The position numbers and the translations under genes are program-made. From Setoptus koraiensis (Eukaryota; Animalia; Arthropoda), in contig CM106586.1 of NCBI GenBank assembly GCA_048013815.1, positions 9,982,001 to 10,046,000 on the forward strand: DNA of 64,000 bases. Direction: 5' to 3'. Under the pieces are notes generated by a model. The model had not been told where the DNA came from. It searched no databases and was given only the letters and a program-made list of their open reading frames with translations. Below are positions 15,959 to 64,000 of the stretch, piece by piece; the first letter of the stretch is position 1, and each line of letters opens with the position of its first letter.

Positions 15959-18037
15959 CTATAGTGCCGCTTGCAATTTTGCAATTGCTTTCGACGATAA
16001 TTGTCGGCCACTGTTTGCCTTGTAAGTTGTTATTTGCTGGTTGGTTATCTTTGACGACGACGACGACGACGATCCGTCTGTGGCACCACAACCGTCACGA
16101 CCGCCATCAATGGCATCATTTGAGTCACCGTTGCTTTTATTGTTGTGGCAGCCGATAATTAGAGCAGAGGACTGACTCATGGGCAATGACGACGACGACG
16201 ACGAACAGGTTGCATTATGAACAGGTGAAATTATAACAGATGCATAGGTTGAGCAGCCGGTCAGTGTGGTTGGCATTTTAGTGGTATTATTGGTAATATT
16301 AGTTGCTGTTGTTGTTGTGTTGTTGTCCATCAACGATTGGCCGTCGTCATCATCATTACTACTAATATTATTAGTATTAACTAGGCTCTTATCAAAACAA
16401 TTACCTGTTTTACCTAATGCTAACAAATCGAGTTTATTTGTCGCTGTTTTATCACTACCTGTTATTGTTTTCGTTGAACTAGTCACATTATTATGTTCTA
16501 TTGATGATGTCTGCGAATGTAGATCTGGCGATGTGTTAATACCGCAATTACCATTGCCATTTGTGGCTGTTGCATTGGCATTTGTGTTTGCAGTTGTTGT
16601 ATTAGTAGAAGTAATGGTGGTGGTGGTGGTGGCAGCATTGGCTAGGCTAGTAGTGGCAGATGTTATGTAATTGGATAACAACACATAACCAGGCGACGAC
16701 GAATCGCCATCCGATGGTGAATGCCGATTATTAGCAGCATTGTTCTGTTGTTGTTGCTGATGTTGTTGTTGCTGATGTTGTTGTTGCTGTTCCACCTGGC
16801 CGCCATTGTTTGCCGGGCCCATCGACGACTGATGATTATGCTGATGAGATACATTAATTAAATTGGCACCGCTACTGCTACTGGTGATCATTTGATCACA
16901 ACTGTCCGCTGTTGTTGTGGATTGTGGTTTGTTTGTGGGTCTGATACCTTCGATCACGTGCTTCATGCCAGTCACCTGTTGCATCATAGACGCTGCATAA
17001 TCCTGTGTATGATGAGGCTGCTCAATGAGGTTGCCGCATGACGAGTTTTTTATCTGATAAGATACAGGCACATCCCGATGATGATTGTGATGATGTTGCT
17101 GTTGCTGATGATGCCTCATGAGTGGGCCACTGTGAAACTGTTGCTCATTTGGGGCCATATCATCCGATGTGTTGCTGTTGGCATAAATCAATTGGCCCAA
17201 CAACGACTGTTGTTGTTGTTGTTTGCCGTCGGCCGACAGCGTGCTGTCGGCTGCGGGAAGACACTGCAATTGTCGCGACTGTTGTTGTGACTGGATCTGA
17301 TTATGCAATCGATATTGGTTTGTTTGTTGTTCGTGCGTCGTAATAATTTGATTGCTATTATGCAATTGATGCTGCTGCTGCTGTTGCTGCTGAATATGAT
17401 GCGAGCTGCCGGTTATAATGCCCTGCATAGCTGTGTCAGTGTCGTCCAATGCCACCAACGTGGACACCAAGTCGGCATCCTCATCCTCAATGAGATCGTG
17501 ATGCTGCTGGTGCTGGTGCGATTGGTGGTGCGGCTGGTGAGCGTGCTGATGGTGGTGCGACTGGTCGTTGTGGTGATAGTTGCTGGGCTGATTAGGCTGC
17601 TGCTGGTGAAGGTGGTTGTGGTGATTGACAGCACAATTATGCATACTATTATTGTTTATTTGCCGGTGACGGTGACATTTGTTGTTGTTGTTGTTGCTGT
17701 TATGTAACAAATGTAGGTCGGTGTCTACGTGATGATGATGAGATTGAGCGTGTCTGTGTATCAAGGTAGAGGTTGAGTAGTCGTCGTTGGCGTCGGCCTC
17801 TTGAATGTCGCCAGTGGTTGCTTGCTCCATTGTTGACAACAGCTGGCTTGCTGGGTCGTGTGTGTTGGTTGCGCCACTTCCGGTCGGGCCGCCACTGGAC
17901 ACAGGTGAGCCTATGTAGCTTGAAATAATTTGCCCTGGCTGGTAATGATGCTGCTGCTGCTGATGGTGTCTGACGGCGTGAACGGCGGGGTCCAACATGG
18001 CGTCGTCTAGCGCCACTGAGTCGCTGCCAGCGTCACT

Positions 18038-18115
<78 letters not shown>

Positions 18116-21100
18116 GCTGTTGCTGCTGCTGCTGTTGGGGCATAATTGATTGAGCGCTTGCTGTTGGGGCGCCATGGCGGACGCACAAAATAACTGCAAT
18201 TGGTGGTGCTGATGATGAGTGTGACTAGATTGCTGATTGAGTAGCTGCTGCTGGTTGTGCTGCTGGTGTGAGTGTGATACGTCCAGGTGAATGTGATTGG
18301 TGGCAGAATGGTGATGATTGTGGTGCTGTGAGTGGTGCCGATGATGCTGATGATGGCCCGCCGCTGGATTGTGCTGCGACAGGTGATTGTGATGATGCTC
18401 CATCGACATGACACTTATGCCCGTCACCGGCCCGTGGCAAGTGTGACCGGCGTCGGGACTGGACGCGCCCCCGATCAAGCTCAACGGGGGCGCCGCCTTG
18501 ACGCCCAAACCGATGTCGTCGGCGTCGCTGGGCTCACCTGTCCTGTTGTTGCTGCTGTTGTTGATGTTGTTGTTGTTGTCGTCTGTTGCTGTCAGCTGCA
18601 GCACCCGCGGACCTGTTGCCATTTCCGTTTCCGTCTGGGGGCGCTGCTGTCTGAGGGTGGCACCAGTTTGGCCACCAGTATTCTGACAGTCCGATGACAT
18701 AATCGACATAACGCCACTGACAACTGGCGTTGCCTGACCGGACACTGGCGACACCGAGCTCAGGCCCACTCTGGCCAGTCTGTTTTGGGGGCCCGTGACG
18801 CCTGGCGGCGGCGCCAGCCCCAAGTGACCACCCTGGCCGCTCAGATGGGCCCCGAGAGAGGGCGCCACCACGGACAGCGGTTCGCCCATGCTCTGCTGCT
18901 CTTGCGGCTCCACCTGGTGGTGAAGGTGGTGATGACTAATGTGATGCTGTTGTTGTTGTTGTTGTTGTTGTTGCTGTTGCTGTTGTTGTTGGCCGAGGTA
19001 ATTAAGATGATGCTGATGATGATTGAGGCAGGTGGGATTATTTGGGTGCTGGTGCTGCTGTTGTGTGTTGTCCAACTGTCGATGGTGGTGCCTCGGCTGC
19101 TGCTGGTGCTGCTGGCGGGCATTGTCCATGGAGTTTGTGGCTAGTTCCGGCGCCGTTTGGCCGGTTAATCTAGGGGGCGACGACGACGACGAGGCATCTA
19201 TATTGCCGCTATGCTGCTGCTGCTGCTGCTGCTGCTGTATCATTACCACCGAGTCTATGGCGGCCTGGCCGGCGCCGCTGGCGGCGCTCATTTGGGGCGC
19301 GTTTGGGGTGAGCGGCGATTGTTGCAATTGTTGTATTTCGCCCTTGAGCTCGCCAATGATGTTTGTCAGGGCCGTTATGTAATTTTTGGCTGAACATGGG
19401 GGCGCCGTCGCGAGCGTTGCGGGCATTCGCAGCGGCGTGTGTGCGTTAGATTGTTGGTCCGAGCGGACGCATTGTTGTTGCGTTGTTGTTGCGTCGGCGG
19501 CGCGTTGATGTTGCGTCAGCGTTGTCCAGTTGCCCGGCGATTATCATATGATTAGCATAATGGCAAATGATGGTTGATGAACCGACGGCGTCGTTGCGCA
19601 ATCAGAGCGCCCCGTCGTAGGTGGCCCGCGATGGTGGCGAACAGACACAAAGCGAGAGAGAGAGAGAGAGAGAGATGAAAGATTAATGGTTGTGCCCAAA
19701 TACCGGCTAATGAATCATTAGTAATGGTGTGACGCCGTTCAGCTGTCGAGCTGGCCGACAATGAATACGAGCGCAGTGTGCCGCTCGCACGGGATACGTG
19801 CGCGGCCGCGGTCTGGACGACGGGCCCGGCAAGCGACGGGCCGGCGCAATTTGCGGGGCCCCCGTTCGGCCAAACAAAGATTTTAAACGAGATGTTGGAC
19901 TCACCTAGTGTCAGCGTCTCTATTTTGGACAGCTTGCGCTCCATGCTGATGTGCGGTATGACCTCTCTGAGGGCCTGGAAGGCGTCGTTGAGGCTGTGCA
20001 TTCGCATGCGTTCGCGCTCGTTGCTCTCAAGTCGGCGCAAATTGCGCTCCCGCGAACTCAGAGACGACTTTTTGCGCCGCAACAGGGCGGCCCCCTTGCA
20101 CGCGCCGGGCGAATCGGGACCCGCGCCACTGGCTAGCTCATGCTGGTTGTGGACGCCGCAGCTAGTGTTGTTTGCGCTGCGGCTGCTCTCGTTGCCGGCC
20201 TCATTTTCGCCGTCCGTGTCCGTGACGAAACTTCCGGTTGCAGCGGTGCTCAACAACTGTTGCTGCTGACCGCTGCTGTTGGCCGCTTGATGATGATGCT
20301 GCTGCTGCTGTTGCGATGGGGACAATTGCATCAGGTGGGCGCAGTGCGCCGACATGTCCGCCAGTTGCTGTGTGTGGTCGGCGCACTGGGGCGACTGCGG
20401 GCCGGCGGCCCGAACGAGCTCGCCCAAGAACGGGCCGGCGTGCATCAGCGGCTGCTTGCCTGCCGCCTCTTGGTGGCCGGTGGTGTGCTGACCGCTGTTC
20501 ATCAATGATTGTGGGGCGCCCAGGCGGGCAGCGCACAGGCGCGCGTCGTCCGCGCCCGCCGCCGCCGCCCCTCTAAACTGGTGCGCTTGTTGACAGTGTT
20601 CGATGTTGTCCGCGGACAGGGCGTAATGCACGTTGTTGTCGCCGCTGGTCGGTTCGGCCGGCCCGACGCGCTGGTTGAACTGGGGCTCGTCCACGTCCAT
20701 TGCCGTGTCGAGCATCGCCGTTACAGGTTGTTGGTTGGCGTGGGCGTGGGCGGCTTGTTGGGACTGGCAATTGGCGTGCAGCCGGGCCCTGTTGGAGCGG
20801 CGCGTGCTGACCCGATCGAGTCGCTTGCCGGACCTGCCGCCCGCGTTGTGCTGCGCTTGTTGTTGCGGTTGATCCTCGGGGTCGCGCTTGCCGTCCCGCC
20901 GCTCGTCCCGCTGCTCGTACCCGGCGTACCCCATGAACTGGTTCATGCCGGTGTCGATGTCGCTGTCGTTGTTGTCGGCGGTGTCGTTGTCGCCGTTGTG
21001 CTGCTGTCCACTTGTTCGCCTGATTATGCTCGTGGCACGGGCCTGCTGTGCGTACCTGCTGGCCGAAACCGATGCGAGCGCGTCGTTGTCATCACTGGCC

Positions 21101-21147
21101 GCGTTGCACCTATCGGCGGGCTCGCCAATTAACCGATTGTTTGTTTC

Positions 21148-21189
<42 letters not shown>

Positions 21190-24100
21190 GTGTTGCTGTT
21201 GGTGTTGCTGTTGGTGTGGCTGTTGCTGTTGTGCTTGCGCAACATTGATACTGTTTGTGGTTGCGTCATTGCGGTCGCCGGCCACTTGACCAGCGCGCTG
21301 TCGCTTGCCGCTTGCCAAGGCGGCCGCTGCGGGCGCCGTTGCGCTGGACGGCGCCAGCGCTCTAGCGGCGAGCGGTTGTACGGCGCCGCTGGCGCTAGTT
21401 AACTGTCGCTGGGCCCGTCGCGTCGATCTGGTCACTATTGAATGGCTGTTGGCCAGCGTCGTGTGCTGCTTGTGGCCACTTCCGTTCCGGCCCGCGTGCT
21501 GCTGCGGCTGCGGTGGCTGCTGCGGCGCCCGCTCTTGTGTAACAATGACCATTTCCGCCTCTTTCAATTTGCCGGGTAATTGTTGTTGTTGTTGTTGCTC
21601 GTATACACTCATTGTTGTTTGCTCGTGCCCGTGCCCTTGCTCAGGCTCGCGCGATATCATGTGTTGATTGGCGTTTGTTGATTTTGTTGGTATTATGATC
21701 AAGTTGATAACGTTGCCCCGCTGTCTGTGATCTTTGTCTAGCTTGGTTTGTGTGGCGAGAGGCCCCAAATTGGGGCCCGCGTCGCTTGTTGTTGTTGCTG
21801 TTGTTGTTGCTGTTGTTGCTGTTTGTAATCTGTCTTGTTGTGCCGCTATAACTGGTGAGTGGTCGTTGTTTGTCTGCTTATTACTCTCATGCGAGCTCAT
21901 AAGTGAATTATTGGCTGAATCACTTTCATCGCCGCTATTCACTGTTGTTTGCTGTTGTTTGTTGTTTCGGCCGCCAGAGTGCCCGTTGTTGTAGTCATTG
22001 TAATCATTATAATCATCATTGTAATCATCGTTGTAATCAAGCCGCTCGTTGTAATCATTATAGCGCGCTGTGTGGTGATAGTCGTGATCACAGTTGCTCA
22101 CATTGGTGTGTCGCTCGCTGTTGTTGTTGCTGTTGTTGTTGCTGTTGTTGTTGTTGTGACCAACCTGCTCTTGCCTATCGCTAGTGTGGCTTTCTTTCTC
22201 GTATGATGCACTTATTGTTGTATTTATTGTTGCACAACAAGATGATGATGATGATGTAATTATTATTTGCTCACTCGCCGGTGCCCGCCGAGTTGTAATT
22301 GTATCGTCGCTAGCAACAAGCGCACGCAAATGAATGTGATCAGCGTCGGGGCCCGGCGCCGAATTAACGTAAGTGGTCGCCGCTAGTGGCCCCACTGGCA
22401 GCTTCACTTCCTCCAGGATATTATGGTAATTTCTATTCTTGAGCGCTCTCGTTTTGGCCGGGCCAACTTTTTGTTGATCTTGCCCGCTTGGGTCTGTTTG
22501 CCTGGCCTCGTTACCTGTCTTGGCTCTCGCGGCTCTCTCGGCTCCTTTGCTTCTCTCGGCTCTCTGGCCTCTTTCGCTTCTCTCGGCTCGCTCGCTTGTC
22601 TCGCCTCTCGTGATTGTGATTATGTGTGTATCGCTGGGGTCGCTGGGGTCGCTGGGGCCGCTATTGTGCGCCGGGCGCCCTCTCTGTCGGAGCTTCTTCG
22701 AGGCCGGCGAGCCCGCCGAGGCCAGTCTGAGCGCGCGTCTGGTGAGTGGCTTGCAGTGCGGCTGCAGTGGGTGCGATTGGTGCAGTCGGTCAGTCTGTCT
22801 CATAAGTAAATTGTTGTGCTGTCTCAATTGCTCGCTTCTCATTCGCGCTGCCGGCCCCAAAAGTCGTCGTTGTGTGAGCCGCTTTTTTTCACTTGATTCA
22901 TCGTCGTCATTTACATACTCGGCGCACCGCTCGTCGGGCTCGCTGGCCGCGTTTGTCACTGTCGCTGTCTCTGTCTCTGTTTTTGTCTCTGCTGCTGTCT
23001 CTGTCTCGGTTGTTGCTGTTGTCACTGTCGTCGTCGTTGTGTCGGTTGTTGCTGTTGTTGTCACTGTCGCTGTTGTTGTCGCTGTGTGCGGCCGCTGTCG
23101 CAAATTAGAGCGGCGCAATTTCGTCGCAACTGGCCCCTCGGCCGGCGTATCTGTGGCCGCTGTACCTGTGGCCGCGCTGTCCAGGTGAGCGGGCGCCGTT
23201 CGCAATTGTTCTGGTCGCTCTAATGAAATGCGCCCGCTCTGCAACGGTTGTCGTGGGCACTGGCCTAATGAGTGAGCGTCGTTGTCGTGCCAAGTTGGCG
23301 AGATTAATGCGCCGGGCCGCTCGCGGCCCCAATGCCGGTCGCCGGCTGCATCTTGCCGCTGTTGCTGTTGCTGCTGTTGCTGCTGTCGCTGCTGTTGCTG
23401 CTGTCGCTGCTGCGACGGCGGGCCGGCCGGACCGGACAGGCGGGCTCGTTTGCGGGGGCTGCTGGCGGCGAGCGGCGCTCTGTCAGCTATTAATTGTTTC
23501 GCTTTTTGTGGCGCTGCTGTCGCGCTGATCGTTTTAATTGTGCTCGCTGCCAATGCAACCGCGAGCGATTCTTCTGGCGATCGTCGGGCACTGGCTACTT
23601 GTTGTCGCTCACTGGCTGTTTGGCTAACCGCAGCTTCGTTTATCCGCCACCTACCAGCATGCCGGCGACAATTGCGATTTTGCGTCTGTTGGTTGGTGTG
23701 TGTGCGGGACGCGTCGGGCCCGTCAGCCGCCCGCTCGTTCGCTGGTCGGTCGGCCGCTTGTCGCTCTGACGATTCGTTCTGATCCGACGATTCGTTCTGA
23801 TCTGACGATTCGAATCGGCGCCCGTGTTGGCGGGATGCTGGCTGACTTTGCACTGCTCGTCGGCGCTCGTCGGGCCCGCGGATGTCCGACTGCACGGCAA
23901 ACAAACGGCGCTTCGACGATTTGTATTTAAACAGCGTTGTCTCGATGATGCTGGTCGGCGGCTGCTGGTGCGATGCTGGCTGCTCGTGCACTGAGCTTGT
24001 CGCCGAACAATCGTTGCTGTTGTTGCCGCTGTTGTTGTTGCTGTTGCCGCTGTTGTTGCTGCTGTTGTTGCTGTTGCCGCTGTTGTTGCTGTCGTTGTTG

Positions 24101-24228
24101 TTGCTGCTGTGGTTGCTGCTGTCGGTGTCGTTGTTGCTGGCACGCTCACTTTGTTGCACTGACGCTGTTTGCGGTGGTTGCAGTTGCAGTTGGCGTCGCT
24201 GTTGCTGTTGTGCCACTGCCGCTACCAT
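15959..24228 (-). CDS. dimm: dimmed/Mist1 (BHLHA15)-type bHLH transcription factor, ~2,584 aa. Exons 24228-19905 and 19389-15959, intron 19904-19390
   Basis: Exon 1 ends [50 protein letters not shown]|GTGAGT. Exon 2 starts ttcag|CC AAA AAT TAC, restoring [12 protein letters not shown] (helix 2) in frame, nearly identical to the recalled Drosophila Dimm bHLH. First in-frame ATG is at 24228 (the ORF track starts at a GTG, 24273; upstream in-frame TAG at 24306-24304). The bHLH and splice are high confidence; the full extent of the low-complexity flanks as translated sequence is less certain. Confidence 0.85.
18038..18115 (-). repeat. Coding (AAC)25AAT tract encoding Asn26 in dimm exon 2
   Basis: The plus-strand (TTG)26 run at 18039-18116 is read in the dimm frame as 26 consecutive Asn. 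Confidence 0.92.
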
Positions 24229-24351
24229 TGTGCCGTCATCATTATCTCGCCTTGTAACTCGCTTTTGCGCCACTAGGGCCGCTCTATTTTTGTGTGTCAG
24301 TCTCTATGTAGCGGCGGCGCTGGCCCAGTTGCCAGTGGTGAGTTTACAAAG

Positions 24352-52565: not shown

Positions 52566-52585
52566 GACAAGTGACAGCGGCCAAA

Positions 52586-55500
52586 ATGAGGCCCCTGGCG
52601 GCTCTGCTCGCGCTGACCGCGGCGACGCTCGCTCTAAAAACGAGCGGCACAGATTGTTTTGGATTGGCCAATTTGAGCCAATACATGCAAAATCCGCTTC
52701 TTCTTCATTTCTCGCTGGAGGGCGAGCCGCCGCTGCGCGAAATTCAGCGCGATCTCGACGACTTCTTCTACCTGAACGAAAACAACGATCGCCCAGTGTC
52801 CGTCACGCGGCTGTCGGGCGAGCCGCCAGCGGGAGCCAAGGACACGGCCGTCAGTTACATAATCAGAACGCTGCACGCAAAATACAAACTGTGCATCAGG
52901 GGCCTGAGCCTGTTCTCGGCCACCTTCTACGACATGCCCGGCGAGAAGGAGCTGGCCAGCGGGCCCCGCACCAACCAGACGCTGTGCGGCCAACAGTTGG
53001 ACTACATGATCGGGGCGGCCGACGCCGACCAGACGCACATTTCGCGCGGCACCAACATCAACGTGATGCGCATTTTGGACACGTTCGGGCGGCCCGGCGT
53101 GAGCACCTTCGAGTCGCAGCTCATCTGGATCGGCAACTACCAGCAGTGCGTCGGTTCGCGGCTGCTGCTGCCGCCCGTCGCCGCGGCAAACGCGCCGACT
53201 GCGGCCGCTGCGGCAAGCGCGGCAAGTGCGGCAAGCGCGGGAAATGCGCCAAGTGCGGACAATGCGGGAAGTGCGGGCGAGTCCGTACCCATGCACTACT
53301 GCGTGGGCCTGTTCCGGTACCCCGAGTGGCCCAACAGCAGCTTCTACGAGCGCAACCTCAACCTGAAGGTGGCGCTGTGCCTGCCGGACACGTGCGACTC
53401 GTTCAGTTACGAGCACCACCGCCAGAGGCTGCTCAAGCTGGCGCTGTCGAACATCGGGCCGCGCCAGTCGGGCCTGTACATGTCGTCGCTGTACTGCCTG
53501 CCCCACAAGCAATCGAAGCTGCTGTCCGCGGAACACAATCCGCTGTACGTGTCGTTTTGGGTATTTTCGGCCGCCTGGCTGGCGGTGGTGGCGGCGTGCA
53601 GCGTGTACCACTTCTTTCTCATCATACAGAACAACACGCGCATAAAGGAGCAAAAGAAGTGCGAGCTGCGCTCGAAATTAATGCAATTAATGTCCGACAG
53701 GAGCGTGGGCGACATATCGGACGCGTCCGAGCTGAAGCTGCTCAACGAGACCATGTCAGCCCAGTATTTACAGATGCGCGTGCGGCAAGTGCGCGAAATC
53801 AAGCAGTTGCGCAGCCTCACCGAACCGGAACACGTGCCCCTCCTGGTGGGCATCTTTAGCATTATCGGCAACTGCCGCAAGCTGTTCACCATCGAGGACC
53901 CGCCCGACGCCGAGCCGCCGCTGGCGTCGGCCCCACGGCTACCCACCGATAACGGTGGCAACGGGACGGACGCGCCGCCCCAGCAGCAGCAGCAGCAACC
54001 GCGCGGCCTAGACAACCGCATTGTCATACTGGACGGACTGAAGGGCATTGCCATGACCATCGTGGTGTTTGGTCACTGCACCCTCGAGGTGATACTGCTC
54101 ACCTTTACCACCGTTGAGGTGAAGGGAAACTTCAATTTCGCCTACAGCGAATACTTTTTCATAGCGCCCTTCATGATGCTCAATTGTTTTCTCATTATAA
54201 CGGGCCTGCTGGCGTCGCTGTTGCTGTTCAAGCAGGGCAAGCGATTTGTCGAATCGCCCCTCAATTGGCTACTCATCACCATCGTGCGCTATTTGCGCAT
54301 CATGCCCCTGCTGCTGTACTCTATCTGGATGTCGAAAGCGCTGTACCGGAAGTTGGGCCAGGGCCCCCTGTGGGACTACGGCACGGCCACCATGACACAC
54401 AACAACATATGCGGGCGCGAATCGTGGTGGCTCAGTGTGTTCCTGTTGAACAATTTGCGCCAAATTAACTTTCAGTGCGTGGGGCCCGCCTGGTATTTGG
54501 CGACAGACTTTCAGTTGTACATGATGACGGCGCCCTTCATCATACTCATGTCCAAGAACCAGCGATTGGGGTATTTGGCCTGTGCCCTGGTGTGCCTGAC
54601 GGGCGTCGTTACGGGCATAGTGACGCTCATGTGGGGCTCCATCGACAAGCTCATTTATTTGATGAAGCCGCCCTACAACGCGGCCCTGTTCGAGGAGGTG
54701 CACTATTACTACACGCTGCCCATCAATCGGGCCGGCCCGTACTTTATGGGCCTGGTGGCGGGCCACCTGATACACCGCATGAATAGGGGCAAGCTGACGC
54801 TGGAGTCGCACTTTGTTTGGGTGCTCAACAGTTGGCCCGTAAACACGGTGCTGGCCAAGGACGACAGCAGCGCCGCCGCCGCCGCTGGCGACAAAACGGA
54901 CGCCCAAACGATGGCCGCCATGTCGTCAAACAATCAGGCCGGCGGCGGGGGCCTGAAACAATTGCTGATTGGCACTTTCAAGACGCATTCGGTGCTCATA
55001 GCGCTGCTCATGACCTTCATGTCGTTCGGCAGTCTGCCCAATTACATACTGATCACCGTGTTTGACATTCAGGGCTCATGGGATTCGCCCCAATGTCGGC
55101 TCATTCTGGCCACACTCATAACACTAGTCACCTATTTCTTTTGTCTGCTGGTGACAATAGCAATGTTTTTTGGCGCAATTGGCTACGACAAGACCTACTA
55201 TTATTCGCTGATAAAGTTGCGCTTGTGGCGGCCCATAGCGCGCGCCTCATTGTCCATACTGGTGTTCCATTATTTCATCATGAAGGCCGTCACCACCAAC
55301 AACGTGTCCTCCTTTGATCCGTCCAGCTTCAAGACGCTCATTACGACCCTGTTCGGCACGGGACTCATTTGCATAATATTGTCAATGGCGCTGTGCGTCG
55401 TGTTCGAATATCCGCTCACCAACACCATCGAGCATCTGCTCAAGACCTACATTTACAAGCGCAAAGCGAGCGCAGGTAAAAAATCGTCGGACAAATCGTC

Positions 55501-55588
55501 GCGCCAGCCAGACAACTCGTTCGGACGGGACGGCGACCATTTTGCGCAAACCAAGTTCGGTTCACAGGTGACATCGGACGCCATTTAG
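52586..55588 (+). CDS. Nose-resistant-to-fluoxetine-6 (NRF-6)-like protein: signal peptide, NRF domain and multi-pass acyltransferase-3 domain, 1,000 aa, intronless
   Basis: Signal peptide MRPLAALLALTAATLALKTSG. NRF-type motifs LDTFGRP...WIGNYQQC, HYCVG and ALCLPDTC. AT3-type motifs LDGLKGIAMTIVVFGH, RYLRIMP, WYLATDFQLY, YYTLPINRAGPYFMGLVAG and multiple TM segments. ATG at 52586 (the ORF track starts at an upstream GTG). Confidence 0.9.
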   Translation: MRPLAALLALTAATLALKTSGTDCFGLANLSQYMQNPLLLHFSLEGEPPLREIQRDLDDFFYLNENNDRPVSVTRLSGEPPAGAKDTAVSYIIRTLHAKYKLCIRGLSLFSATFYDMPGEKELASGPRTNQTLCGQQLDYMIGAADADQTHISRGTNINVMRILDTFGRPGVSTFESQLIWIGNYQQCVGSRLLLPPVAAANAPTAAAAASAASAASAGNAPSADNAGSAGESVPMHYCVGLFRYPEWPNSSFYERNLNLKVALCLPDTCDSFSYEHHRQRLLKLALSNIGPRQSGLYMSSLYCLPHKQSKLLSAEHNPLYVSFWVFSAAWLAVVAACSVYHFFLIIQNNTRIKEQKKCELRSKLMQLMSDRSVGDISDASELKLLNETMSAQYLQMRVRQVREIKQLRSLTEPEHVPLLVGIFSIIGNCRKLFTIEDPPDAEPPLASAPRLPTDNGGNGTDAPPQQQQQQPRGLDNRIVILDGLKGIAMTIVVFGHCTLEVILLTFTTVEVKGNFNFAYSEYFFIAPFMMLNCFLIITGLLASLLLFKQGKRFVESPLNWLLITIVRYLRIMPLLLYSIWMSKALYRKLGQGPLWDYGTATMTHNNICGRESWWLSVFLLNNLRQINFQCVGPAWYLATDFQLYMMTAPFIILMSKNQRLGYLACALVCLTGVVTGIVTLMWGSIDKLIYLMKPPYNAALFEEVHYYYTLPINRAGPYFMGLVAGHLIHRMNRGKLTLESHFVWVLNSWPVNTVLAKDDSSAAAAAGDKTDAQTMAAMSSNNQAGGGGLKQLLIGTFKTHSVLIALLMTFMSFGSLPNYILITVFDIQGSWDSPQCRLILATLITLVTYFFCLLVTIAMFFGAIGYDKTYYYSLIKLRLWRPIARASLSILVFHYFIMKAVTTNNVSSFDPSSFKTLITTLFGTGLICIILSMALCVVFEYPLTNTIEHLLKTYIYKRKASAGKKSSDKSSRQPDNSFGRDGDHFAQTKFGSQVTSDAI

Positions 55589-57356: not shown

Positions 57357-58045
<689 letters not shown>

Positions 58046-58479
58046 AAACAATAAGCCCAGTAGTTGACCCATCATTTAATCGACTATGTACGTGTAACCA
58101 AACACGCTAAATACAATACAACAAAACCAACAACAGCAACAACAACAACAGCATCTCTCGGTCCCAGCAAGAGATGCATTTTTTTTCTTCGTCGACGACG
58201 TATGACAAGAAGGAGAAACAAAAAACACAAATCAGACGCTTAAGCTCAGAGTCAATTTATTCAAAATCTATGCAGCTCTACAGCATGTATTATAGATATT
58301 TGTATCAATTTGTAATAGTATAGAATAAAAAAGAATTACCATGATCTAGTTAGAACAACTTATCCGCTGACTGCTACATACTCAGCGTATCAACGTTGCT
58401 GATCAACCATCAATTGGCCTCGTTTATTGAAACAACGCAACTACCAATTATCATTGTCATAGTCAATTGAACTGCCACA

Positions 58480-61400
58480 CTAGGAGTCTTCAAGTTCTAG
58501 TTGAGACCACAGTTCCAAAGCAGCACTCGGAGATGACGGTCCAGGCGACGATGTAAAAGAAGATGGAGGTCCGCTCCAGATGAGCGAGTTACTCAGACTG
58601 TTTCCTGGTGATAACGCCATATTGTGTTGATTGTGTTGGGCAGCTTGAATTGTTCGTGAATCATTGATCGAATTGTTGGAGGATAGAGAGCATGAAGATA
58701 TCTTATGATTTCGGGTCAACTTCTGCAGAAATCTGTTAAATTGTTTTAGCGACAGCTCGTTGTGTAAAGTTTCCAACGGCCTGATTGAGGGCAACGAATA
58801 TGGACAAGGTAAATCCAAATCTTGTGATGATCCAGTTATAACGGCTGTGCTAATGATAGAAGTTGGGGGAGCGCAGAACAATGACAAGTCTGCAACACTG
58901 CAAGCCCTAGGATATGATTTTGAGCATAGCGATTGTGTAGCTTTCTGTTGGTGAGATCCTGTTTGACTCACGGATCTCGGTGGCAGTTGTAGAGTTTTGG
59001 CAGTTAATAACGACGAGCAAAGTTCGTCGCGAACGGTGGCATTATAAGTGTCGCGATTATCATCGGCTATATTCTTAAATAAATCCTGCAAACTTATAGG
59101 ACTCACAGCTGAATGGCTTCGCGAAATTCTCTTCGATTTGAGGGCTAAGATTCTCGCGTTAGCCGCTGTCAATGTGTGACTAGTTTCCGAATCTTCATCA
59201 CTCTCTGTGTTGTAATCTGAATTATTAGTAGAGCGTTCATCATCTGTGTTCTCTTCTTTGATCACAGTGGGAGCTTGAATACCCGAACTACTTGTTGTAG
59301 CTTGATTCGAGGATACAGTTGTAGGCCTACTAGAATAGGGATAATGACTAGCATAATTCTTGCTTCTTGCGTGTGGACGAAAACCAGGTCCCTGCGGCTC
59401 TGTGGGTAAATTATGCTGCTGCTGTTGATTGCCCACACGACCCACAACACCCGAACTAAAATGAATTTCCACATGAAATCTGTCGTCACTAGTGGCCTCT
59501 TTAGTGGGATCTTCGTAAAGCATAATAACTATCTGGGAAAGATAGTTGAGCTCAGAAATGGCACTCAAGTACTCCATAGATCTTCGCCACTGTTCATCAG
59601 CATCCTTAGCCTCTGAGGCCAACAATCCGCCGAAGCGAAGCGCAGTAACAAGTGAATGGATATGACTTTCGCTGGTAAAGTACAACCTCGTACGTACATG
59701 CCTTCCGGGGGACGAAACTCCATGCGAATATTTAGGATCTAATCTGTTGACACTTTCAGTTGTGTCATCGTCACTGGCGGAGTCAGCATTCCTTAATAAA
59801 TCGGCCTGTATTTTGAGCAACAATGGACAGCAGATTCCAAGACCAATCATCAATTTTTCTTGACTAGTTATACCGTATTCTTGGGGTATCACAACATCCG
59901 CTAGAGCTTTAGCATAAATATGAAGTTCGTGGGCAAATGGAAATTGCAACGTCTGCTGATTATGTTGTAGATCGTATTTGATACAGTCGTAGATGTCAGG
60001 AATTTTGCTTATGTCGAAACGTTTTAGCCGTGGCACACTGAAATCTTTTTCCAATTTAGACCAGCGTCTTTGTAACAGATCCCAGGTTTCTCCGTGATAC
60101 AAATGATATTCTTGCGTGTAACCGTTATCCTCTCGTCGGCATTTTATAACATGATTCAATTCTTTTATAAGACGATGAACATTTTGGCAAGCTTGATAAG
60201 GATTTCTGATGAATTTCATTGCCGCAGCTATTGATGGAGAATTGGTGGCATTCAATTGTGTCATATCTTCATCGGTGAAGTCCCCATCCTTTTGCATTAT
60301 GTCGTGCAATCTTTCTTTTACTATCTTTTGATATTTACTAGATTCGCAGTCATTATCCAGTAGTCCGTTTGTATTAGCACTTTTTACCATCTGAAACAAA
60401 ATAGGTGTCAACTCGCCCTCCAATGCCAAAAGGCCCTTGGCAAATGCGGCCGCTGTCATTTGTACTCTACCCTCATCGGAGGCGTATATCTTCAAATCGT
60501 GCCGAAATGTACTATGCAAACGTAATAGTCCCAAACCTTGAGGCCCCGAATAGTCACCGGAAGCAGGGTACAGTCTTCTGAAACACCTTCCTAGTTCTTC
60601 AGCCTGCACACGACCTGCTGGCGTGAGCTCACCGCCCCATTTAAGTATGAGAACAAGAGAGGGATCTCGGCTAACTTCGTCCTCGCTACTAGATCGTCTC
60701 GGTCGTCCATAAGGTTGATACTTGAGCTGGACTTTCCTATTGATGCCCGAAAAATGCCCGTACATTTCTAGTACCGATTTCAGCTGTTCTAGTTTGATTC
60801 TAGGCTCCATAACTTCCCCCTCGGGCATCTGATCGGGTAACTCACCAAGTAAAAATCTAGCGATATCTAGAACCTCTTGCAGTTGCTTTGGTTTTTTCAA
60901 TTTTGCGTGTCCATCTTTTTGATTTCCGTACTTATGATAAAGTTCGAAGAATTTTACGTGCTTTACCTCCATTTTCATTTTTTGTTTCGGTGTTCGATCT
61001 CCATGCCGAATGACGGCTATTACACATCTCAGCTCCATCATACGTCCAAAAGTAGTAGGCACAATTGGTGGATCGTCCAATTGAAACGGTACTGACCACG
61101 GAATATGCAACTGGGGTGCTAGGGCCCTTAGCATAATGTTACCTAATATTTTGGAACAGTCCTCATAGTATTTCATCGAACTCTTAACAAAACTAAAACC
61201 ATTCACATCGCACACATATGACTTTCCATTGGCTCTTAATAGATCGAAGCCACAAACAGTTTGTTTAAATGCCATACAAACTCTTCTAGCAATAAGTTTC
61301 TCCGTATTTGTTAATATGACTGGATATCTGATCTCTTTACCGTTTCCATCTCGTTCGACCTTTCCGTCCAAAGCCGGCGACTTTCTGGCCTCAGCGTGCG

Positions 61401-63276
61401 CGTAATCAGGGCCTGCGGTATATACTTTTACATCAGTTCCATCGGTAGGCATAAACTCTTCATAAATATAAGATCCACTTTTTCTAACACGACTCTCACT
61501 GGAATAGACACTGCTCCTACAGCCTATCTTTCTAAAAAGACGTTGACTGCCGCCTCCCGCATGAGCTGGATAATAGATGTATATGTTGTGATCTTCAGCG
61601 GATATTGGCTTCTCTACAAATGGCTTATTAAACGTAACATTGTTTATTTCAACGTGATCGTCGCTTTCTATGAGTTCACGCTCCTCGAGGTTGGCAGAAT
61701 CTCTATCCAGTACAGCGTAGCGTGGTAACTCAATATCGGCCTCTTCCAAGATTTTGTATACTTTTCTTCTATCTTGAATATCATATTGGATATCAAGATC
61801 ATTCACCAAGAATGGCTTACGCAATCTAGCATACTCTATTGCTTTCGACAATGGAAATCCTTTCGAATGAAAAGATATCAGACAATCGCATAAGGGCCAA
61901 TCGCTTACAGGTTTGTTCAAAATCGTCGATTCATCGAAAACAAGTGTTTTTATATACGGTTCAAAGTAGTCCTCCAACCTCTTGAGAATCTCGGCCATAG
62001 GCTTAGACTGAGCCTTCTTTGCCATGGCGCAAATACCCACTATGACTTGTTGATGTGACTTATCGTAATCATCTTCATCGACTGATTGATTATCCGTAGA
62101 AACATCATCGGACTTATCAGTAGTATGGTCATTTCTGAACTGAGAACTGTCCTCACCAGCCGAATCTCCGGCTTGAAGGTTTATAGGGGTTGCTGGTGAG
62201 TTTTCACTCGGTTGGTGCTCTACATCGGCAGAGCTGCTACCTGCCTCGGTGTCAGCAATTGTATTAAATTTAAGAAAATCTATCAATTTACGTAAGCCAA
62301 ACAAATATTTTTCGTCTCTGGAATCACTATTGACGGGGTGCAGATGGAATACATGAGCAAAGTCAATCAAAGCTAATCGCACAGATTGTTCAACATCGTC
62401 TGATGAAGAATCATACACGATGAGTATGGACGATGAAATGAATTGTAATTGACCGACATTGTAATTGAAGAACCATGATTCAATGTCGTCAAGTTTTTTC
62501 ATCACTCGATCTATTGTCTTGTGCCTGTTCTCACTGGATTCTATTGCCGAGAAGAAGCTGTAGAGAGCCTCTGATAGTTGATTATGGCTCAGCAACGTCC
62601 TGCCGTAATGCTTGTCTTTGTCTAATAAAATTTCACCATTGCTTGAGGTTACTTTCATTCCTAGAATACGAAAACCAAATTCAGATAGCTTGCTATATTT
62701 ATTGGACTCTTCGAGAATTTTCTCTCTTGTTGCATTTGGATCATATGTAACCTGGCCTATTTTGATGTCGATGACACAAGGTGTCAAGCAATGAGCAGTG
62801 AGATCCTCCAGGCTTAGAAAAAGAGATGGATGATCACTAACTGAGTCTCCTTCTTCTGACATTTCCTTATCTTGATTGTATACTAGGCGACATATGCCCT
62901 TATATTGTGGCACGTGCTTGACCAATTTCAACAATGCTTGCTTGTCCAATAAACAGGAACAACAACTGTTTAGATCACGAATTTTAAACAAATCCATATT
63001 GCTATAACTATAATTTTCACTGCTGCTAATTTCTCTATCACAATCGTCGGGGAAATTGGTTTGACTTGGATCCGAAGAAAGGTTTTCCTCCAGTTTGGAC
63101 AACTTGTCTAGTAGCTCATAGAAATATATCTCTCGCTGGCTTCGGACATCCGTCAAGGTTATGGGCTTAAGAATGTGCTTGGTAGTCTTGCAACGATAGA
63201 AGCCATCGTGTCCTGCCACCTGATACTGGCTACATTCGACATCATCGAACATGATATCATGAGATATTTTCATCAT
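58480..63276 (-). CDS. PPIP5K: IPMK-PPIP5K fusion protein, 1,598 aa, intronless: IPK-family kinase + ATP-grasp diphosphoinositol pentakisphosphate kinase + histidine acid phosphatase-like domain
   Basis: From aa ~411: [93 protein letters not shown] (R757), [11 protein letters not shown] and [12 protein letters not shown], all PPIP5K/VIP1 hallmarks. Residues ~17-337 carry IPMK motifs. No stop codon separates the two parts. Confidence 0.93.
62266..63228 (-). other. IPMK: Inositol polyphosphate multikinase (IPMK/Ipk2) domain forming the N-terminus of the fusion ORF
   Basis: [35 protein letters not shown] (PxxxDxKxG), [33 protein letters not shown] and LIDFAHV appear in the order and spacing recalled for human IPMK. 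Confidence 0.92.
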
Positions 63277-64000
63277 ATCACGAGAGACTACTAAGAGTCT
63301 CCGGGCCAGCTGTCTTTGTGTAATGTACTTAATAAATTACTCCACTACCCTGAATGGGATAATGATTTGGCTAAAATTGGTGGCACATCGTTTGCTGTTG
63401 TACTAATATAATGCTAATAATAAATAATAATGTTAATGATGATAATGGTGACAGCTAAATTTGTTTGTTAACCACACCGTACATGCTACAACAATGTGAT
63501 TATTTACATACGTAAATAATAAAAAACAAACATATTCAGTGCAAGCTAGCCAAGGGTGTCTCATATAGTTTCACACGAGATGCAATATGTTCACGAGAGG
63601 CCGCTACGGTTGCCAATAACGATATCACTTTAGCGTCGTTTGCTGCGCTAGACATGCAGCGATTGTGGCCCGCAAGTTGAACTAAAAACACCTTGTTCTC
63701 TTTTCGCAAGAGGGCGCGTGTGCTCAGACTTCGTCATGTTCACTGTGAACAGTTCACATGTGTGTGTGCGCGGTTCTCTCAGAAAAAATAAAAGTAAAAA
63801 TAAAAAAACATGTGTACTCAACATCGCAAGATCAAGTGCGATCAGGGGAAGAAAGAATCGTTGTTTATTTCCATATCTTGTATACATTATTATCATTATT
63901 GTTGTTACATAATCATAACATAAACACAATTGATTTACAGCTCAATTTACATTTAATTTAAATTTGAAATTGCCATGTCAGATGAAATCGCCATGTCAGA

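Follow-up and report, generated by a model that had tools for sequence, protein, structure and literature searches.

An inositol polyphosphate multikinase (IPMK) and an inositol pyrophosphate kinase/phosphatase of the PPIP5K/Vip1 family share one uninterrupted open reading frame (ORF) of 1,598 codons in the genome of Setoptus koraiensis, a conifer-feeding, early-branching eriophyoid mite (PMC11920263). The ORF lies at 58480-63276 on the minus strand of a 64,000-nucleotide stretch (here called the window; assembly GCA_048013815.1, contig CM106586.1, positions 9,982,001 to 10,046,000), starts with ATG directly preceded by an in-frame TGA, and is the sole long ORF at the locus according to the ORF list and its translation. 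It probably represents a true fusion, specific to this lineage, in which the mite's own IPMK and PPIP5K genes were joined end to end; the two modules would be tethered on one chain and most likely work independently of each other. Both are well-studied enzymes, which are encoded on separate genes in every other sampled eukaryote. The features of the fusion ORF are as follows.

58480-63276, minus strand: the whole fusion ORF, 1598 codons plus the stop codon at 58480-58482, the same in independent contigs.
62221-63276, minus strand: IPMK-type kinase of the IPK fold, aa 1-352 (Pfam IPK aa 153-336, 62269-62820; E 4.8e-45), identified by Pfam, by human IPMK as best solved relative and by a structure model.
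62755-62781, minus strand: PxxxDxKxG catalytic motif, PCVIDIKIG at aa 166-174, with D170, K172 and G174 invariant in 45 IPMKs.
62353-62367, minus strand: IDFAH metal-binding motif, aa 304-308, with D305, F306 and H308 invariant.
62047-62220, minus strand: acidic/Ser-rich linker predicted to be disordered, aa 353-410, an open frame without Met and with a predicted local distance difference test score (pLDDT) below 50.
61072-62055, minus strand: PPIP5K N-terminal plus ATP-grasp kinase domain, aa 408-735 (PPIP5K2_N aa 411-502), identified by Pfam and by the human PPIP5K2 structures 3T54/3T7A (E 2e-167).
59455-61035, minus strand: histidine acid phosphatase-like domain, aa 748-1274 (His_Phos_2, E 4.3e-75, profile positions 1-354), with RHGDRTP at aa 757-763 (60988-61008).
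58483-59454, minus strand: low-complexity C-terminal tail, aa 1275-1598, with an end motif (13 residues, followed by ALELW..LELE) common to relatives' PPIP5Ks.

The order along the chain is therefore that of the list: the IPMK-type kinase, the linker, and PPIP5K with its ATP-grasp kinase, its histidine phosphatase domain and its C-terminal tail. Pfam places three domains on the translated ORF, namely IPK (PF03770), PPIP5K2_N (PF18086, E 2.6e-38) and His_Phos_2 (PF00328), the last of which is covered over its entire profile. A preliminary description of this DNA, made from its letters, had proposed a single in-frame ORF in which an IPK-fold kinase is joined to a PPIP5K, so that three catalytic domains stand in one frame; this holds at the DNA level, where all three look intact. 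Base composition changes little along the ORF, with a G+C content at third codon positions of 0.35-0.41 in its parts and a similarly even G+C content over the IPK part, the linker and PPIP5K.

The fusion might be an artefact of assembly or consensus calling, in which an indel error in long reads or a chimeric join would have run two neighbouring genes together. The source assembly, a chromosome-level sequence of 47 Mb in two chromosomes, was built on noisy continuous long reads (PMC11920263), and the preliminary description asked for such an error to be excluded. Logan contigs from three independent public runs each span 57950-63900 (5,951 nt) whole and extend about 0.7 kb and 2.2 kb beyond the ends of this stretch, that is, about 1.3 kb and 2.8 kb beyond the ORF. 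The first contig (X1) does not differ from the window at any position. The other two (X2 and X3, of equal size and perhaps a single data set deposited under two entries) differ from it by five single-nucleotide polymorphisms (SNPs) and, upstream of the ORF, a 6-nt insertion; in the ORF itself they have neither an indel nor a stop. Two of these SNPs lie inside the ORF and both are synonymous (Glu594 and Glu1203), against three SNPs and one indel in the approximately 620 nt upstream. Since the X2/X3 set carries SNPs of its own, it derives from a different sample. Around the junction (61800-62500), 99-100% of the sampled words are present in seven runs from four studies. With independent contigs crossing the junction without a stop or an indel, and with composition even over the joint, an assembly artefact is excluded at the DNA level, and the probability left to this explanation as a whole is extremely small. 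One run, X5, in which the stretch is patchy, was considered as RNA-like and rejected, its low-depth pieces fitting a low-coverage DNA genome skim better. About 4% of the junction's sampled words also occur in two air-metagenome runs (X14 and X15), which would agree with dispersal of mites by wind or with a stretch conserved in a relative.

The two proteins are joined essentially end to end, the joint lying between about aa 340 and aa 381 as judged from alignments. Local alignments of IPMK relatives stop at aa 334-340 and the stop codons of these relatives fall near aa 368 of the fusion protein, while the alignment of the best PPIP5K relative begins at aa 381. The last approximately 30 residues of the linker, from the acidic run to 'DYD...QVIVGICAM', are homologous to the N-terminal extensions of relatives' PPIP5Ks, in agreement with the likeness to an acidic PPIP5K N-terminus that had been pointed out in the preliminary description. 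The linker stretch before aa 381 matches the IPMK relatives more weakly, and we infer that it is derived from IPMK. As a whole, aa 338-410 (62047-62265) contain 25% Asp plus Glu and 25% Ser plus Thr, and the linker proper is predicted to be disordered by AlphaFold2.

Such a linker, predicted to be exposed and accessible to proteases, might be cut, or the PPIP5K part might be made separately from an internal start of transcription or translation (at Met418, Met427 or a non-AUG codon), so that two proteins arise from one ORF. AATAAA motifs within the coding sequence (aa 192 and aa 543) could also be taken to favour separate products. Met residues occur at aa 1, 2, 9, 94, 139, 207, 259, 418 and 427, and so no AUG is available between aa 259 and aa 418; that Met is lacking from the end of the IPK domain to the conserved VIVGICAM had been noted before and is borne out by this list. 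Met418 itself lies within the first conserved strand of the PPIP5K N-terminal domain, and a product started there would be truncated. The 219 nt of 62047-62265 leave little room for a promoter. Moreover, this segment is open in the coding frame only, with 2 and 12 stops in the other two frames, and a composition-matched random stretch of 219 nt would be free of stops with a probability of 0.013. Such an open frame is unneeded if the halves are made apart, although it would still be needed for a precursor to be cleaved. Because the AUG is lacking and the frame is maintained, separate products are disfavoured, and we regard this alternative as unlikely.

The N-terminal 352 residues resemble stand-alone proteins of the IPMK/Ipk2/Arg82 type in fold and in motifs (QVAGH, PxxxDxKxG, SS(I/L)L and IDFAH), and differ from them in that the IPMK lacks a stop codon and its C-terminal tail runs into PPIP5K. 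By sequence, the best solved relative is human IPMK (E 1.7e-29), with IP6K at E 7e-9. An AlphaFold2 model of the IPK and linker part, built on an alignment of the IPK half with stand-alone IPMKs, has a mean pLDDT of 81.5 and a predicted template modelling (TM) score of 0.79; as far as about aa 350, most residues have a pLDDT over 90. In a Foldseek search with this model, human IPMK comes first (E 2e-20, TM score by target 0.84-0.86), before yeast Ipk2, IP6K (1e-13) and IP3K (1e-12). Thus, sequence, fold and the tree described below agree that the IPK half is nearer to IPMK than to IP6K or IP3K. In an alignment with 44 stand-alone IPMKs, the IPK half retains all invariant residues, which belong to QVAGH (aa 19-23), the Lys of LKP (aa 37), PCVIDIKIG, SSSIL (aa 281-285, the SSLL motif for metal/ATP binding in the C-lobe, where S283 and L285 are invariant) and IDFAH.

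It is conceivable that the IPK half is a dead remnant without catalytic activity, retained only to extend PPIP5K at its N terminus or to regulate it, with an active IPMK encoded elsewhere in the genome. Its identity to the 37 related IPMKs is just 33-41%, and it lacks the Cys-rich insert containing CPCYG that all 37 crown-group IPMKs possess. On the other hand, it keeps 47 of the 49 columns that are conserved at 90% or more in the 44 stand-alone IPMKs (the stand-alone median is 98%), including every invariant catalytic residue, and an IPMK-like fold is modelled confidently. The 37 relatives share only about 54% identity among themselves, and the branch of the IPK half is no longer than theirs. 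Outgroup IPMKs also lack the Cys-rich insert, which points to a later gain in the crown group rather than a loss here. We therefore consider a dead remnant very unlikely; the IPK half looks functional and is predicted to act as a 3-/6-kinase on Ins(1,4,5)P3 and InsP4.

The Cys-rich insert (KCNCxID ... CPCYG ... K..C.R.Y) lies between the N-lobe and PxxxDxKxG, and is common to all 37 stand-alone IPMKs of crown eriophyoid type (P0008-P0044). Mites outside this group and scorpions do not have it, and the IPK half of the fusion has the first CxC part only (aa ~100-150, ~62830-62980). The insert may be a zinc-binding module that was gained after the basal split. Another non-standard architecture of the IPK family, an EF-hand combined with an IPK domain, is seen in P0058 and P0074 among the distant matches.

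The C-terminal 1,190 residues are those of an ordinary arthropod PPIP5K of the PPIP5K/Vip1/Asp1 type, with PPIP5K2_N, an ATP-grasp kinase domain, His_Phos_2 with the RHGxRxP motif in the form RHGDRTP, and the C-terminal motif of the clade. The difference is that this PPIP5K lacks a separate start codon and is preceded by an entire IPMK. Its kinase domain matches the kinase-domain structures of human PPIP5K2 over their full length. The best relatives of this half, intronless ORFs on contigs from Logan and from plant metagenomes, are 76-86% identical to it, the PPIP5K of the eriophyoid mite Aceria tosichella is 83% identical, and those of ticks and spiders about 62%. The PPIP5K half, at 84-88% identity to relatives, looks functional and is predicted to be a 1-kinase/1-phosphatase acting on InsP6, 5-InsP7 and InsP8. 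At aa 438-448 (~61933-61965) it contains one inserted residue, a Pro within this 11-residue segment, which none of the eriophyoid relatives has; GICAM and RHGDRTP stand 343 residues apart in the fusion protein and 342 in those relatives.

Both halves have orthologues among eriophyoid-type sequences, and the two trees repeat the same position. In a maximum-likelihood tree of PPIP5K, the window half is sister to 23 eriophyoid-type sequences including that of Aceria, in a clade with 100% support and a long stem. In the IPMK tree, 37 stand-alone IPMKs of eriophyoid type, 341-454 aa long, form the sister group of the window IPK with 98% support. Because the IPK tree repeats the position found with PPIP5K, the IPK half is judged by phylogeny to be the lineage's own IPMK orthologue and not a foreign or paralogous domain. 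Its root-to-tip length is 1.59, compared with about 1.6-2.3 in the relatives, and that of the PPIP5K half is 0.28, compared with about 0.45. These similar lengths do not point to decay or faster evolution since the fusion, and the low identity of the IPK half is best read as fast evolution of IPMK across the whole clade.

All 23 related PPIP5Ks and all 37 related IPMKs are unfused. The PPIP5K genes of the relatives begin at start codons of their own, are preceded at 57-78 nt by an in-frame stop and stand among unrelated neighbours, while the IPMK genes examined encode 405 and 422 aa in separate ORFs, which lie on other contigs and are not followed by PPIP5K. The genes next to IPMK or PPIP5K in the relatives have no counterpart in the window. 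Hence the two genes are separate and unlinked in the relatives, where the preliminary description had suggested looking for the fusion, and its proposal that the fusion is lineage-specific stands. No species of the genus or family of S. koraiensis is represented in the libraries searched, and the fusion may be of any age within the basal lineage.

The architecture was also sought beyond the mites. An exhaustive HMMER scan with aa 1-560 against 1.84 billion representative proteins gave 3,929 matches, the best 150 of which each span one of the two parts, IPK or PPIP5K, and in no case the two together. With the IPK part as query against 5.8 billion clusters, only long fungal IPKs were found among proteins of 879-2,796 aa. 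The exact fusion protein is absent from a collection of 15 billion sequences, and no cluster of the ESM Atlas joins the IPK and PPIP5K families. Pfam scans detected no IPK domain in the longest PPIP5K relatives, and none was found among the best 120 of 8,000 PPIP5K relatives scored. Several candidates were rejected as fusions: five PPIP5K matches with long N-terminal regions (P0204, P0227, P0241, P0255 and P0265) have no IPK domain, and long 'IPK' proteins of 1,260-1,440 aa are fungal and contain PF03770 only. Two database entries named PPIP5K, a Chamberlinius protein of 2,087 aa with glutamate-receptor domains (P0194) and a Pollicipes protein of 1,825 aa with two sets of PPIP5K domains (P0076), were likewise rejected as comparable fusions, as they look like merged gene models from intron-rich genomes.

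A survey of inositol phosphate kinases over the eukaryotes mentions no fusion (PMC8024741), and the sole natural multidomain IPMK protein found in the literature is HDAC2-IPMK of Plasmodium falciparum (PF3D7_1008000; PMC12694804). That gene is also an intronless fusion containing IPMK, although the partner is a histone deacetylase, the IPMK is C-terminal and the host is an apicomplexan (PMC12694804). The earlier statement that no natural fusion of IPMK and PPIP5K is known is thus upheld for the libraries searched and the literature found, and the combination of IPK and PPIP5K appears to be undescribed, a new domain combination of known enzymes.

As to the origin of the fusion, the IPMK and PPIP5K genes would have come to lie head-to-tail in an ancestor of the lineage, after which the stop codon of IPMK, the spacer and the start codon of PPIP5K might have been lost in a genome that was shedding introns and intergenic DNA. 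Eriophyoid genomes are extremely streamlined, and more than 80% of Aculops genes are intronless (PMC7738191). Loss of intergenic DNA is, by this analogy, a plausible neutral mechanism of fusion. The product would be one polypeptide of about 180 kDa, consisting of the IPMK module, a flexible acidic linker some 55-70 residues long and the bifunctional PPIP5K. The IPMK module would phosphorylate IP3 and IP4 to IP5, and the PPIP5K module would make and break the 1-pyrophosphate of the inositol pyrophosphates IP7 and IP8. In the canonical pathway, the steps of IPPK and IP6K stand between those of IPMK and PPIP5K, which are not consecutive. Substrate channelling is less likely for this reason, and the fusion would presumably enforce equal (1:1) expression and a shared location rather than the passing of a substrate from site to site. 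The coupling of entry and terminal steps that the preliminary description had proposed, possibly with a scaffold for IPPK and IP6K, is speculative, and a metabolic coupling by design is no more likely than a neutral by-product of genome compaction.

Some points weigh against a fusion of neighbouring genes that is translated as a single chain. IPMK and PPIP5K were found as neighbours in no relative examined, so that an origin from tandem neighbours is something we infer only. The runs that contain the stretch are all probably DNA, and the genome report comprises DNA data only, with no RNA-seq (PMC11920263); translation as one chain and the enzyme activities are accordingly predictions. Furthermore, a random fusion would not be expected to bring together two members of one pathway, which leaves room for selection on the fusion.

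Selection would have kept the fusion under a functional coupling, in which the IPMK module supplies or pre-phosphorylates the substrate of PPIP5K, for example by making a diphosphoinositol phosphate (PP-InsP), so that the two steps become effectively consecutive. In addition to the shared pathway, it could draw on multikinases of the IPK family (yeast Arg82 and plant IPK2-type enzymes), which are reported to form pyrophosphates (reference 53 of PMC8024741; PMC12445474). The intervening IPPK and IP6K steps, the length and predicted disorder of the linker, and the 23 relatives that manage with separate genes all speak against it, and such a coupling seems rather unlikely, though worth keeping as a minority view. 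A bolder version would see the protein as a self-contained inositol pyrophosphate synthase, in which the 5-pyrophosphorylating (IP6K-like) reaction has passed to the IPMK module, or this module delivers a non-canonical substrate, and in which one chain with three active sites makes and controls IP7 and IP8 in a rewired PP-InsP signalling. We hold this to be quite improbable; if true, the protein would be the first natural 'Rosetta stone' physically linking IPMK and PPIP5K.

The lineage-specific fusion of two tethered modules, which we favour, is of interest in its own right. It offers a ready-made construct with three active sites for testing whether proximity of IPMK and PPIP5K alters the flux through IP7 and IP8. 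It is also a dated example of extreme genome compaction creating a multidomain protein, being present in the basal lineage and absent in at least 23 relatives. Its weight is limited by the non-consecutive steps, by the possible neutrality of the fusion and by a single chain deduced from DNA.

Elsewhere in the window, an Rfam scan of which gave no match, the ORF at 52571-55588 on the plus strand is intronless and convergent with the fusion gene; it encodes 1,005 aa with the N-terminal domain of NRF (nose resistant to fluoxetine) and Acyl_transf_3. The G+C content of the window ranges from 38% to 62%, and is about 40% in the region of the fusion gene. At 15959-24273 on the minus strand, where it reaches 57-61% with a strong AT skew, two long ORFs lie on the same strand with 125 nt between them, one of 1,573 aa with a helix-loop-helix domain (HLH, aa 1413-1455) and one of 1,155 aa without a Pfam match.

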